This document shows positions 51,459-64,000 of a stretch of 64,000 nt of DNA, piece after piece. How positions within the stretch are numbered: the stretch's first letter is position 1; every line of letters begins with the position of its first letter. The DNA comes from Oopsacas minuta (lineage: Eukaryota; Animalia; Porifera). The notes beneath the pieces were generated by a model. It saw nothing but the letters and a program-made list of their open reading frames with translations. It did no database searches and was not told the origin of the DNA. The position numbers and the translations under genes were made by a program. The stretch spans positions 744,001 through 808,000 of the forward strand of contig JAKMXF010000088.1 in the NCBI GenBank assembly GCA_024704765.1, given 5' to 3'.

Positions 51459-59379
<7,921 letters not shown>

Positions 59380-59771: not shown

Positions 59772-60098
59772 CTACTTTATGGATAGTAGCTCTACGTCAA
59801 ATATCAGAACAGCATTAGCAGGGATTGTTCCTGGTACTCCAGAAGCACCATACCCGTAATCCGGTGAGATTGTCAGGATAGCTTTCGATCCGACAGACAT
59901 CTGAGGAACTCCCTCGTCCCAGCCTTTTATGACTTGTCCCACACCGATCTTAGTTTCGAATGGCTTCCCTCGGTCTCTGGAGGAATCAAACTTCTTTCCG
60001 TCTTTTAGAGTTCCTGTATAATGCATAACAACAGTCTGTCCTTTCTTGGGATAAGTCTTACCATCTCCTTCCTTAGTTATCTGTACTTCTACTCCCAT
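59772..60098 (-). CDS. FKBP12: FK506-binding protein 12 (peptidyl-prolyl isomerase), intronless, 108 aa
   Basis: MGVEV...[37 protein letters not shown]...VIKGWDEG...YGYG...[14 protein letters not shown]. Confidence 0.98.
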
Positions 60099-60162
60099 TC
60101 TGTTATTGTTAACTATATTACTTGTTAAGATTAAAAGGTTCCCTATACGATACTATTAGGGG

Positions 60163-60260
60163 TTAAACCATGGATGGTAGATTTAGTTAATCTACTCTGG
60201 ATTAGTGGCTATGCCTGCTTGGAGGGGAATTTCTATAACGAATCCATCATCCATGGTTAC
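60163..60260. mobile_element. piggyBac-like MITE upstream of FKBP12
   Basis: ttaa(a)ccatggatgg ... catccatgg-ttac. Confidence 0.7.
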
Positions 60261-60477
60261 ATATCTTATAAGCATTAAGGGAGCAGACTCACAATAAAAA
60301 TGGCAGTATAGAGCATGTTTTGAGTATATCCACTTATATAAGATAGCTACCATTAAGTTTTGGGATACACATATAAATGTATAGGATTACAATTAGATCA
60401 GGATAGCAACCATATATAGACAAAGGAATGTATCATTACAATAAATCGTATGTAAAATCATAAAATAATTGAATTAT

Positions 60478-62490
60478 TCATAATTCAACTTGACTATCAA
60501 GTTGGTCAGATGGAATGTCATCATCTGATTCATATATGTCATCCTGTTTATTATAAATACCTTCCATCCTAATTACGTATATCAATGGCATATACGGAGG
60601 GACACTATCAGGAACACCTCTACTCCCGTAGGCGGTTATAGAAGGACACACAATTATTCGGATCTCCCCCAGCTTCATGTCGGAGATACCCTTGGTCCCG
60701 TGGTCCCATGCGGGTACTACTTCTCCTAGACCGTATCGGAACTTCATGGGACGAGGTTGGGGAGTAGGACGACACATTCCGTGATCAGCTAGTGTCGATG
60801 AGAACAGAGAAAAGGCCTCGTCGAATCGAGCAATGACATTTGAGAGTTTCACCTTTTGGTACTCCATTCCTGGGGGTCCCATCCGTAACACGGATATCGT
60901 ATCCTCGCTAGGGACAGCCCTGAGAGGAGGCCAGTATCCCTCATGGAGGACTAGTTTATTCTGTATGGGAGGGTAGCGGAGATATATGTTAAGGTCATCA
61001 ACTGAGAAGGGGGAATCTACTTTCTCTCTGGAGTATTCTAGGATATCTTGTAGCTGTTTCTGCGTAATTTTATGCTTTTCAGAATTAGTCTCATCTTTCA
61101 CTAATTTATCTACTTCACATAGCAGCTGTTGTGCTTTTTGCTTAACACGTTTCTTAACACATTCTACCCTCTGTTTAATAATATTTAACTTCTCATCTTC
61201 CTCCTGAACCTTTTCAATATTAATAGCTCGCAATCTTTCCGTAATATTTTGAATAATTCTAATCTTATCAGGAGTGTCCTTTGACATTATTTCATCTTTA
61301 TATTTATCCCATGTTATGTCGTCAGGATTATTATCATCGAATATTGTCTTAATTTCGGTTTTAAGTTGATCAAAAAAATATTTGAATAACGGGGCCAAGT
61401 CATTCATAAGATCTCTGAAATCTGGGTAATCAATCTCTTGCCTGGGTCCTGCAAAGAGGAATGCTCCATCGGTTTTGAGACAGTAATTTCTAAGTCTATT
61501 TATTTCGTTTTGATCTTTTGAGATATCTTTAATCTTCTCCAATTTGTTTAGAACTTTAACAAGAGTATTCTCCTTTTTTTGATTCTGATTATTTTGATCC
61601 TGTATTTCTTTTAACCCGAGGTATGTCTTGATGTCTTCAATCTCAGATAGTCTGACCTCAAATCTCATTCTATATGCATACAGCCCTCTCACTACCCTAT
61701 CTACCTCTTTATCGTATTCCACCCTTCGCTCCAGAACAGATCTAAACTCTGTGGAATCAGGAGTTAATATACTATCTATTCTTCTGTGAATCTCTCTTAT
61801 CAATACTTCCTCTTGCTTCCAACGATATCTATTAATTTTGTCTAATAATTGGTTTATTTCGTCAGAAGGCAACTGATGTTTGTAATTATCCAAGGACTTA
61901 TTGAATTCAAATTCTGTCAGCTTGTTAAGTAGTGGAGGAATGTCCTTATTCTTATTTTTATTCTTATTTTTATTGTAGTTGTGTATAATATCATTGAATT
62001 CAGTCTTAATCTCAACAAAATGATCCTCATTCATAGTGGGGGGAGATAGCTCATCATTATCATTAGAAGCAAACTTCATCCAGGTATCTACATAATGTGC
62101 ATACTCCTTCTTCCATTCCAAGTAGTGATATGTGTTGTCAGGTTTGTTATAGTATTGGAATTCATGGGAACGATTTAGGAACTTGTCTCCTTCGCCCATT
62201 CCTTTCATGACAACATCACCGGGTAATTCTGACTGTTCGAGTGTTTTCCTCAGCTCTGTTCTAAGTGTGGGAGACCATTTTTCTCTGAAATAGCACCATG
62301 GAGGCAGGTAATATCCAGCATAGTTAACAGCTACTAGTGTACCTACTCTAATAGGATTATACTTAGGGATATCTCTACTGTTAATCTGTGCATTTGATTC
62401 TATTAATCCGGGTAGCTCGTGTGTAGGTTTAGAACTTGTGGGAGAGATTGGAGATGATATGCTTATGACGTCAGGAGATGTTACTGACAT
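60478..62490 (-). CDS. 670-aa intronless protein with FKBP-type fold elements separated by a ~500-aa helical insertion
   Basis: N-terminal PIRVGTLVAVNYAGYYL resembles the FKBP strand [16 protein letters not shown]-terminal SLFSST..PMKFRYGLGEVVPAWDHG..MKLGEIRIIVCPSITAYGSRGVPDSVPPYMPLIYVIRM covers the rest of the FKBP domain. Confidence 0.8.
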   Translation of the reverse strand: MSVTSPDVISISSPISPTSSKPTHELPGLIESNAQINSRDIPKYNPIRVGTLVAVNYAGYYLPPWCYFREKWSPTLRTELRKTLEQSELPGDVVMKGMGEGDKFLNRSHEFQYYNKPDNTYHYLEWKKEYAHYVDTWMKFASNDNDELSPPTMNEDHFVEIKTEFNDIIHNYNKNKNKNKNKDIPPLLNKLTEFEFNKSLDNYKHQLPSDEINQLLDKINRYRWKQEEVLIREIHRRIDSILTPDSTEFRSVLERRVEYDKEVDRVVRGLYAYRMRFEVRLSEIEDIKTYLGLKEIQDQNNQNQKKENTLVKVLNKLEKIKDISKDQNEINRLRNYCLKTDGAFLFAGPRQEIDYPDFRDLMNDLAPLFKYFFDQLKTEIKTIFDDNNPDDITWDKYKDEIMSKDTPDKIRIIQNITERLRAINIEKVQEEDEKLNIIKQRVECVKKRVKQKAQQLLCEVDKLVKDETNSEKHKITQKQLQDILEYSREKVDSPFSVDDLNIYLRYPPIQNKLVLHEGYWPPLRAVPSEDTISVLRMGPPGMEYQKVKLSNVIARFDEAFSLFSSTLADHGMCRPTPQPRPMKFRYGLGEVVPAWDHGTKGISDMKLGEIRIIVCPSITAYGSRGVPDSVPPYMPLIYVIRMEGIYNKQDDIYESDDDIPSDQLDSQVEL

Positions 62491-62582
62491 TGAATATCTA
62501 ATTACAATGCTACATGGATCATTAACTGTTGGAATAAAGATAGAAAGAGTCCCGCCGCCTGCCTCTTATTTAGTACAGTTAT

Positions 62583-62709
62583 TTAACCATGGATGGCGGA
62601 TTTAGTATATTTGCTTGGATGTTTTTCTAAGCTAAGGCACTTCTCTCTTGGTTGGAGGGGAATTTGTATCAAAAAAGCATAAATAAACGAATCCACTATC
62701 CATGATTAA
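62583..62709. mobile_element. piggyBac-like MITE upstream of the 670-aa gene
   Basis: TTAA-ccatggatgg ... tatccatga-TTAA; same orientation as 60163-60260. Confidence 0.75.
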
Positions 62710-62803
62710 TAACATTTCCATTCTACACTATCAATAACCAGCTATATAAGGTGTCAAATATGTATAATTCATCAGAAATACGAATAATATTGAAATGATA
62801 CCT

Positions 62804-64000
62804 CTAAGCGGTCTTAGCATCTGATTTAATTTTCTCTTCCGTCAATTTCTGTTCGTGTTTTTCGTGTTTATACTTTCTATTAGTTTTCCTGTATTTTAAT
62901 TCCTGTTTCGTTAACTCCTCAAAATGTGTTAGAATATCATCTGATTGACTCTCCTCAATCTTATCAACTTGTATAATATATATAATGCCCTTTAATCCTT
63001 CGTAGAAATTCTCATCTCTGATATACCCACTGAATCCGGATATGTTCTTGAGTATAGGGAAGTAGTGATTTACTTGATCATTACGATCAGTTTCTAAGAA
63101 TAATATATAACTACTGTCTGTATATTGATATAGTGAAACTTCGTTAATACGAATTTCCGGTTGAGACAAACAGAAATTCACACAATTGTAATTCAATTGT
63201 TTTTACTCCGGATAATGAGTACAAATCTAGACGGTCCTTTGGTGTACGTATTAACGAGGTTTTACTATATATTTATATTTTCACACCTTTAACCGGAGTA
63301 ATATCCTTGTCCTTCTTCCTCTCTTCTCTGTATAATCTTTTTCTTTCACTCATCAACCACTTATCTTCTATCCAAATAGTCTCAACATTATCATTACCAG
63401 TGATCTGTTTATATACGTCATCATTAATTGATTTAGCCAGTTGACGAGCTCCAGGGGCTCTACACCAAGGCATACCCCCAGTAAATGCCTCCTCAAAGCC
63501 TCTTATCTCGTCTCTATCCCTCCTCTTGTATACAGGTTTATTAGGATGTAGCTGTAGAGTTAGTTCTCTAGATTTACGATACTCCATATCAACTGATAGA
63601 AGCTGTTCTCTATGAGGATAGTATACATTGATATTTTCACACCTGACACACATAACTACAACTTACTTTGGTACAAAAGCTATCCTGATCTCCTTCTCTC
63701 CTTCCATATCCCATAAGGCTTCTACTAGAGATGCTACAAGGTGGTGATCTCTACGTCCAAACATAATCCTGAAGCCTCGTTCTAACTCCCTCTCTACTCT
63801 CCTATTAATCTCTGCCTCCAATTTATCACCGGGGATATTGTCAGGAGGGGGTGCGTCACGAGCTAGTATATTCTCAACAGAAGTGTAGTATTCATCTCTG
63901 TACTCAGATATATCCTTATCCCATAGAGAAGCATAACGCGTATACTCACTAATAATATCCTTCCTACATTTCTCCTCATAGAACTCTTTCTTACTGTCCC
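62804..64000 (-). CDS. 3' part of a spliced gene (5' end outside the window), probably a highly degenerate FKBP-like protein
   Basis: Exons >64000-63667, 63609-63287 and 63117-62804 join in phase (2, then 1) and merge the separate ORF-track ORFs into one frame. It contains GFRIMFGRRDHHLVASLVEALWDMEGEKEIRIAFVPKE and GIIYIIQVDKIEE. Confidence 0.6.
63130..63268. mobile_element. pogo/Tc1-like MITE in intron 63118-63286
   Basis: 23-bp TIR tatagtgaaacttcgttaatacg / cgtattaacgaggttttactata (21/23). Confidence 0.85.

Follow-up and report, generated by a model that had tools for sequence, protein, structure and literature searches.

A glass-sponge protein whose FKBP domain appears to be split by a helical insert of about 490 residues

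Organization of the locus

The window analysed here is a stretch of 64,000 nucleotides from the glass sponge Oopsacas minuta (assembly GCA_024704765.1, contig JAKMXF010000088.1, positions 744,001 to 808,000). Toward its end lies an open reading frame (ORF), here called the long gene, whose product (the long protein) carries FKBP sequence near both ends and a long charged stretch in between. The two ends probably belong to a single FKBP fold. The long gene is one of four FKBP-family genes that are co-oriented and separated by very short gaps (59772-64000 in the window, and in the assemblies L001-L006); the others are FKBP12 on its downstream side and two derived genes, paralogue B and paralogue A, on its upstream side. 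The features are listed in Table 1. The stop codon of the long gene occupies 60478-60480.

The downstream neighbour is a single contiguous domain of ~108 residues, and an earlier sequence-only reading of this DNA, which had called it a canonical FKBP12, described it correctly. The long protein is not an FKBP12 orthologue of this kind: it has 670 residues, and the 61 columns in which it aligns with the neighbouring FKBP12 show 30% identity.

Table 1. Coordinates of the long gene, of the parts of its product and of the neighbouring FKBP-family genes (window positions unless another locus is named)
Feature	Coordinates	Strand	Description
Long gene, whole	60478..62490	-	Stop-free intronless ORF in the ORF list, 670 codons, 670 aa
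Residues 1-42	62365..62490	-	S/P/T-rich N-terminal stretch, weakly conserved; model confidence (pLDDT) <50
Residues 43-62	62305..62364	-	Putative N-terminal FKBP piece, equivalent to FKBP12 ~12-31 (loop and strand B)
Residues 63-496	61003..62304	-	Main body of the insert; charged, mostly alpha-helical as predicted
Residues 497-554	60829..61002	-	Nearly invariant segment, the putative return into the FKBP fold
Residues 555-646	60553..60828	-	C-terminal three quarters of FKBP: strand C, helix, strand D, normal-length flap, strand E
Residues 647-670	60481..60552	-	Acidic tail with the conserved motif Y-E-S-D-D-D
FKBP12 gene	59772..60098	-	Canonical, 108 aa; 379 bp downstream of the long gene; Pfam FKBP_C E = 4.8e-37
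Paralogue B	62804..64000	-	Upstream derived FKBP, at least 3 ORF pieces; runs off the window end
Paralogue A	L001 7425-8456; L002 7106-8092; L003 7000-8106; L004 5698-6678; L005 7162-8133		Lies beyond the window end in Oopsacas

FKBP sequence at the C-terminal end

Pfam FKBP_C (PF00254) matched residues 580-642 of the long protein with E = 3e-9 and a score of 37.5 bits, above the curated cut-off of 21.1. The match covers profile positions 33-93 of 94 only, and therefore the first third of the FKBP domain is not adjacent to the rest. Solved FKBP structures matched the same C-terminal stretch by sequence, the best matches being FKBP52 FK1 and FKBP13 as much as FKBP12, which the sequence-only reading had taken for the parent. 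The C-terminal part had been proposed from sequence to supply the remainder of the domain, and the Pfam match falls within residues 555-646, as that proposal implies. The flap is of normal length, with 17 residues from Y621 to Y638, as from Y82 to F99 in FKBP12.

The alignment also shows which positions of the proline-binding pocket are kept. Y57, V591 and Y621 of the long protein correspond to Y26, V55 and Y82 of FKBP12, V592 corresponds to I56, and Y638 takes the place of F99. The start of strand C can be paired in two ways. MAFFT pairs the FKBP12 sequence KFDSS with residues 555-559 (RFDEA), which keeps F36 and D37 as F556 and D557; in the alternative pairing with residues 562-566 (LFSST), F36 and D37 correspond to F563 and S564. 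The predicted structure has low confidence over residues 553-577, where both pairings lie. It is thus possible that D37 is retained, as D557, and not replaced by S.

A strand B match near the N terminus

An FKBP12 profile used with hmmsearch found no N-terminal match in the long protein, yet it did find the corresponding strands in paralogue A. For this reason we turned to an ungapped scan, in which segments of a position-specific profile built from 100 FKBP12 sequences were slid along the protein and compared with shuffled controls. Counts of orthologues refer here and below to the seven full-length copies, that of the window included; an eighth copy is frameshifted. Residues 50-61 gave the best match in the whole protein to FKBP12 positions 20-31 (strand B), ranking first in six of the seven orthologues and second in the other, 0.1 bit behind the top score. 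Averaging the score over all orthologues gave z = 5.7, with P = 0.001 when columns were shuffled and P = 0.006-0.017 when single sequences were shuffled. The best local 12-mer for strand B near the C-terminal part starts at residue 529 and reached z = 2.5. Pfam found no match in short pieces (the N-terminal motif, residues 497-579 and the N termini of paralogue A), and the filters of HMMER probably drop matches as weak as these.

Residues 43-62, which include this motif, are nearly invariant across the orthologues, and Y57, the counterpart of the pocket tyrosine Y26, lies within it. The sequence-only reading had placed an FKBP strand at residues ~46-62; the translation agrees with it, and the profile scan now locates the best strand B match there.

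Paralogue A carries an insert at the same hairpin

Paralogue A, a protein of 310-368 residues, is encoded two genes upstream of the long gene and was seen in L001-L005. Strands A and B of FKBP12 have their counterparts at its N terminus, where the FKBP12 profile detected them in all five copies. After strand B, at the same hairpin as in the long protein, it has an insert of ~40-75 residues, partly of low complexity. Its middle part matched Pfam FKBP_C positions 34-75 (E = 1.3e-4), and a second, acidic insert of ~110 residues lies in the flap.

Strand B of both paralogue A and the long protein carries a derived motif, Y-A-G-Y, and strand C opens in both with a second one, F-C/S-S-T...H-G; FKBP12 has neither. 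When the two proteins were compared by hhalign, the C-terminal part of paralogue A matched residues 553-626 of the long protein (E = 2e-6), and its strand B matched the N-terminal motif in a second, separate alignment (E = 0.0012). By its position in the array, its shared motifs and its insert after strand B, the long gene belongs to the same tandem family.

A P-W-C motif occurs just after strand B in the long protein (residues 63-66, L-P-P-W-C-Y-F-R-E) and recurs in the flap inserts of paralogue A (E-P-W-C-D-A-P-G) and paralogue B (P-W-C-R-V/A-P-G). In the hhalign comparison it was the third, non-significant match.

Predicted structure of the long protein

The structure of the long protein was predicted by AlphaFold2 from an alignment (A6) in which only the seven orthologues span both ends. 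Its other rows cover the N terminus only (P0128, residues 1-86) or begin at residue 553 or 555; generic FKBP12 rows were restricted to residues 36-108, covering positions 555-648, and the rows of paralogue A start at 555. This alignment was used because coupling between the two ends must not be imposed by the alignment itself. Alignments A4 and A5 were discarded since MAFFT had stretched short rows across both ends and so imposed the very coupling under test. Prediction from the single sequence gave no usable model, with a predicted local distance difference test score (pLDDT) of 34.

In the A6 model residues 52-61 form a strand, with pLDDT of ~90 for the block 51-60, and residues 581-650 have pLDDT of 85-92. 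A hairpin at residues 531-548 is predicted at pLDDT 54-64. Judged by superposition on solved FKBPs, the FKBP part of the model has the FKBP fold, a curved antiparallel sheet round a short helix.

Structural alignment with VIA-align was used as a read-out of the topology of the model. Model residues 43 to 646 were superposed on residues 12 to 107 of FKBP12 chains, over 88-89 residues with a root-mean-square deviation (rmsd) of 1.9-2.3 Å and Z of ~11. Taken over FKBP12, FKBP13 and FKBP51, the matches had Z of 10.8-11.9 over 80-99 residues with rmsd of 1.8-3.4 Å; the superposition on FKBP13 reached Z 11.8-11.9. Lower-scoring structural matches included 2f2d (Z 8.5) and 2lkn (Z 6.8). As a control, chain 6m4v_B, the 75-residue C-terminal fragment of an engineered split FKBP (residues 34-108), aligned only with model residues 62 to 646, over 72 residues. 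The N-terminal piece thus adds ~16-17 superposed residues, about what would be expected in the model if it replaces residues 12-31 of FKBP12. In the alignment of SlyD stripped of its own insert, its residue 1 falls on model residue 45; FKBP folds starting at strand B are thus known.

The insert

Between the two FKBP pieces, residues 63-554 make up an insert of 492 residues, 34.8% of them charged. In the model 59% of it is helix, several of the helices being 30-60 residues long, and 6% is strand. The claim of ~500 stop-free, charged and probably helical residues, made earlier from the sequence, therefore holds for the 670-residue ORF. Conservation along the insert is uneven: it is higher at residues 100-160 and 220-300, low at 300-480 and very high at 497-554 (block conservation 0.67-0.84). 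The last of these segments, which contains the predicted hairpin, also has two aromatic-Pro-Pro motifs, R-Y-P-P-I and W-P-P-L-R.

The insert has no Pfam family and no internal repeats detectable by self-BLAST. Its profile found nothing among the sequences of solved structures (best E = 0.054, coiled-coil noise), and a structure search returned generic long-helix proteins only, at Z 6-8, a range that the tool flags as uninformative. A profile of residues 1-555 searched against 1.84 billion representative proteins found only the long-protein family itself.

A dipeptide repeat (N-K-N-K-N-K-N-K-N-K) at residues 171-180 (~61951-61980, minus strand) occurs only in the window copy; the orthologues have unrelated, variable sequence at this site.

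A short L-P-x-W-L-like motif lies within residues 1-42, and every orthologue has an in-frame N-terminal extension with this motif. In the tail (residues 647-670), Y653, E654, S655, D656 and D657 are invariant, and Asp and Glu together make up 37.5% of the residues. The Y-E-S-D-D-D motif resembles a casein-kinase-2-type phosphorylation site or else an acidic sorting signal.

Orthologues and gene order

Among 5.8 billion proteins searched there were six full-length relatives of the long protein, at 42-50% identity, which align with it from end to end; over the full-length orthologues the identities span 42-52%. Public databases already list the long protein as a prediction without a name. The eighth and more divergent copy, L007 (ERZ25072730), lies on a contig of 2x coverage and is divided into five ORFs through frameshifts. 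L007 is from the same sample as L002, and sequencing error in a second, rare sponge or haplotype is the probable cause of its frameshifts.

The orthologues in L001-L006 stand in the same gene order: paralogue A, paralogue B, the long gene, FKBP12, an array of SRCR domains and Cu/Zn superoxide dismutase. In six other assemblies, too, FKBP12 is the neighbour of the long gene; in L004 an extra minus-strand Sod_Cu-like ORF stands between them, the one exception in the order. Because the same order is found in other assemblies, the FKBP/SRCR/superoxide dismutase region is, judging by gene order, a stable syntenic block. The gap between the long gene and FKBP12 is even shorter in L001 and L003 (~106-108 bp) than in the window, and the mean intergenic distance over the Oopsacas genome is ~2 kb (PMC10280926). 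It is possible that the genes of the array are co-regulated or co-transcribed.

Paralogue A is represented in two named sponges. Its orthologue P0131 is the Oopsacas minuta protein KAI6658619.1 (hypothetical protein LOD99_15417). The paralogue A that shares contigs with the P0002 group matches a transcript of Vazella pourtalesii, and a complete paralogue A transcript is present in the EukProt set of this species. Oopsacas minuta and Vazella pourtalesii are both lyssacinosid hexactinellids. As far as sampled, the long protein is by its sequence matches specific to glass sponges. A Logan contig with a Vazella orthologue was considered as transcript evidence and rejected, the contig being genomic.

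Selection on the long protein

The ratio of nonsynonymous to synonymous substitution rates (dN/dS) was calculated between the closer orthologue pairs. For the insert (residues 71-496) it was 0.21-0.41, at dS of 0.7-1.7; for residues 497-554 it was 0.12-0.31, for the N-terminal motif 0.07-0.35 and for the C-terminal FKBP part 0.01-0.08. The first 40 residues were near neutral (0.24-1.7), and all other regions were below 1. By this measure the insert is under purifying selection. Since its ratio lies at 0.21-0.41, the middle of the ORF is to be read as translated sequence, not as an intron. The frame is moreover open over ~2 kb in seven assemblies, and many columns of the insert are invariant.

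The FKBP part is by the same measure under extreme constraint, and its very low dN/dS shows only that the domain matters. Because most pocket positions are kept and the constraint is extreme, we infer that this part may still bind prolyl peptides.

A single discontinuous FKBP fold

We propose that residues 43-62 and 555-646 of the long protein, ~490 residues apart, form one discontinuous FKBP fold, and we give this model a probability of about 0.65. It is supported by the strand B match, the anatomy of paralogue A and the AlphaFold2 model, in which the strand at 52-61 is predicted with high confidence and the two pieces together superpose on FKBP12; a split fold had been proposed from the sequence alone, and the prediction supports it. 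Residues 43-62 would contribute the loop and strand B, in which the pocket tyrosine lies, and residues 555-646 would supply strand C, the helix, strand D, the flap and strand E. The helical insert would have grown out of the B/C hairpin (FKBP12 ~31-34). Paralogue A and the long gene probably inherited an insertion at this hairpin from their common ancestor, and it would have expanded furthest in the long gene; that paralogue B shares the ancestral insertion is suggested by eye only.

Several observations weigh against a single split fold. The evidence for the fold comes from one AlphaFold2 model with a mean pLDDT of 63 and a predicted template modelling score (pTM) of 0.38, and only eight sequences cover the N terminus in its alignment. 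Residues 497-528 and 553-577 have pLDDT <50 although they are nearly invariant. Strand A of FKBP12 (residues 2-8) was not recovered in the superposition of the model. Comparison of the N-terminal 310 residues with FKBP12 by hhalign was not significant alone (E = 0.022, probability 2%). No transcript of the long gene was found in the collections searched, where only paralogue A has one (Vazella). The pocket is also less uniform than the sequence-only reading had it: Y26, V55 and Y82 are kept and F99 is changed to Y, as it stated, but the position of W59 (W595), which it counted as kept, is W in four orthologues and L in three (W in Oopsacas, L in the Vazella group), the position of F46, given as M, is M, I or L across the orthologues, and the change of D37 to S depends on the pairing chosen. 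Finally, FKBP-like matches occur inside the insert. Residues 138-143 (K-F-A-S-N) weakly resemble K-F-D-S-S (P = 0.022), and residues 273-284 (~61639-61674, minus strand; consensus R-M-R-F-D-V-R-x-x-E-I) resemble FKBP strand E (column-shuffle P = 0.0028) even more closely than the genuine strand E at the C-terminal end; their hydrophobic residues alternate as in a strand, but the segment is helical in the model. Such matches hint at a more complicated history.

The main rival, which we consider unlikely, starts from these matches. According to it the N-terminal motif is homologous to strand B and no longer packs on the C-terminal part. It would be what remains of a degenerate FKBP unit at the N terminus once two tandem paralogues had fused, while the C-terminal part completes itself with the hairpin 531-548 or works as a partial fold. 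The matches at 50, 138 and 273-284 do stand in the right order in the N-terminal half, a weak hhalign extension pairs residues 37-120 with FKBP12 positions 5-90, and a local hairpin is predicted within the nearly invariant segment 497-554. However, when hhalign compared the N-terminal half with FKBP12 or paralogue A, nothing past strand B was confidently paired, the orthologues do not conserve the stretch at 70-90 where strand C would lie, and the invariant M, R, V, R and E of 273-284 are mostly not FKBP core positions. AlphaFold2, moreover, docks residues 52-61 on the C-terminal part at pLDDT ~90, and paralogue A is a single FKBP with an insert at the same hairpin.

Still less probable is a plain two-part protein, in which a long N-terminal region precedes a complete local FKBP whose strands A and B come from residues ~506-548. 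A few solved bacterial FKBPs align by sequence back to residue 541-551, weak strand-A-like scores occur at residues 531 and 541 (z ~3), and the predicted hairpin at 531-548 would suit such strands. Against this, Pfam covers only the later profile positions, the best local strand B score is less than half that of the N-terminal motif (z = 2.5 and 5.7), and model residues 43-61 are needed to reach 88-89 aligned residues, the C-terminal part alone reaching 72. Residues 506-520, suggested earlier as a second copy of the strand, scored poorly with the strand profile and fall in the region of pLDDT <50 (497-528), so that this suggestion is not supported.

An artefact of the gene model, in which an intron left unspliced makes up the central stretch of the ORF or the gene is not expressed, would fit the lack of a transcript in the collections searched and the short introns evident in the neighbouring paralogue B, but it is hardly credible beside a frame open in seven assemblies, an eighth copy broken only by frameshifts in a 2x-coverage contig, and an insert with many invariant columns and a dN/dS well below 1.

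Comparison with known FKBP architectures

The nearest known arrangement to the discontinuous fold proposed here is that of the SlyD-type FKBPs, in which a beta-rich insert of ~65 residues lies in the flap, between A-Y-G and L-x-F, binds unfolded clients and hands them on to the active site; FKBP12 gains greatly in protein-folding activity when insert-in-flap domains are grafted into it (PMC11013033). Like SlyD, SlpA and archaeal FKBP17-26, the long protein would have an FKBP fold interrupted by a second module beside the pocket, and like SlyD its model lacks the first strand of FKBP12. Unlike in SlyD, the flap is normal and the insert is helical, stands at the B/C hairpin and is ~7x larger, with ~490 residues. 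The long protein thus differs from the insert-in-flap class in the site as well as in the type of domain, and the profile searches of 1.84 billion proteins and of solved structures found no sequence relationship for its insert.

The site of the break has a man-made counterpart. FKBP12 cut near residues 33/34 gives fragments that reassemble into a fold described as structurally indistinguishable from the intact protein (PDB 6M4V; bioRxiv 10.1101/2020.03.16.994277). The engineered fragments reassemble, and therefore the B/C hairpin site is structurally permissive; the natural break in the long protein lies within a few residues of 33/34. In contrast to the engineered protein, which consists of two chains and needs rapamycin and FRB, the long protein is one chain with a conserved link of ~490 residues.

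AIP/XAP2 and FKBP38-type proteins have FKBP-like domains that serve mainly for protein binding, and AIP has an extra insert of tens of residues near the flap. They resemble the long protein in being FKBP folds with altered pocket residues, and 2lkn and 2f2d are among its structural matches. They carry TPR domains, whereas Pfam finds none in the long protein. In FKBP25 and yeast Fpr3/Fpr4 the FKBP domain is complete and contiguous. A domain scan of the long protein gives a similar picture to theirs, with a long N-terminal region followed by a C-terminal FKBP match, but its first FKBP third lies ~490 residues upstream, and Pfam finds none of the N-terminal domain families of FKBP25 or Fpr3/Fpr4 in it.

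Inserted domains are normally smaller than their hosts (PMC13114784). With an insert ~4x the size of its host, the long protein would be an extreme natural domain insertion. FKBPs are among the best-studied small folds and are widely used by engineers to build split proteins, chemical dimerisers and grafts of chaperone domains; the proposed architecture would mean that in nature the B/C hairpin tolerates very large payloads. The series from FKBP12 through paralogue A (~40-75 residues inserted) to the long gene (~490) within one array would be a rare stepwise view of how an architecture grows, and it draws attention to a lineage-restricted, strongly constrained family of hexactinellid proteins. 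No description of this architecture was found in the literature on FKBP and sponges, on FKBP domain insertion or in the Oopsacas genome paper, and the only relatives among the 1.84 billion proteins were members of its own family, in agreement with the earlier suggestion of an undescribed class.

Possible function

The B/C hairpin adjoins F36 and D37 at the rim of the proline-binding pocket in the structure of FKBP12. By analogy with the SlyD-type proteins, the helical insert could tentatively be a client-binding or scaffolding module placed beside a proline-binding pocket that still functions.

A more elaborate possibility, to which we attach little weight, is that the split itself is functional. 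The long protein would then be a natural "split-FKBP" switch, in which the two pieces complement each other within one chain or, by strand swapping, between chains. Strand swapping would give dimers or polymers spaced by the helical insert. The invariant R-Y-P-P-I and W-P-P-L-R motifs might also gate the switch, by occupying the proline pocket as built-in pseudo-substrates. With paralogues A and B, such a switch would form a set of assembly or regulatory modules based on FKBP and specific to glass sponges.

Paralogue B and the SRCR array

Paralogue B consists of two or three ORF pieces in the same position in L001-L006 (L001 8626-9889). The gaps between the pieces are ~10-190 bp (~70-80 bp in the window) and are probably short introns. 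None of the pieces has a Pfam match, and their likeness to FKBP is seen by eye only. By eye, the first ORF starts with G-Y-L-I...W, and a long helical stretch precedes an F-x-I-x-F-G strand; F-R-I-M-F-G...H-L-V-A-S-L-V-E-A-L-W...I-R-I-A-F-V-P and later G-I-I-Y-I-I-Q-V can be recognized as FKBP-like motifs, with a very large insert where the flap would be.

On the other side of the FKBP genes, the SRCR-domain array lies 3' of FKBP12 at 56763-59379 of the window, on the minus strand, and is multi-exon.

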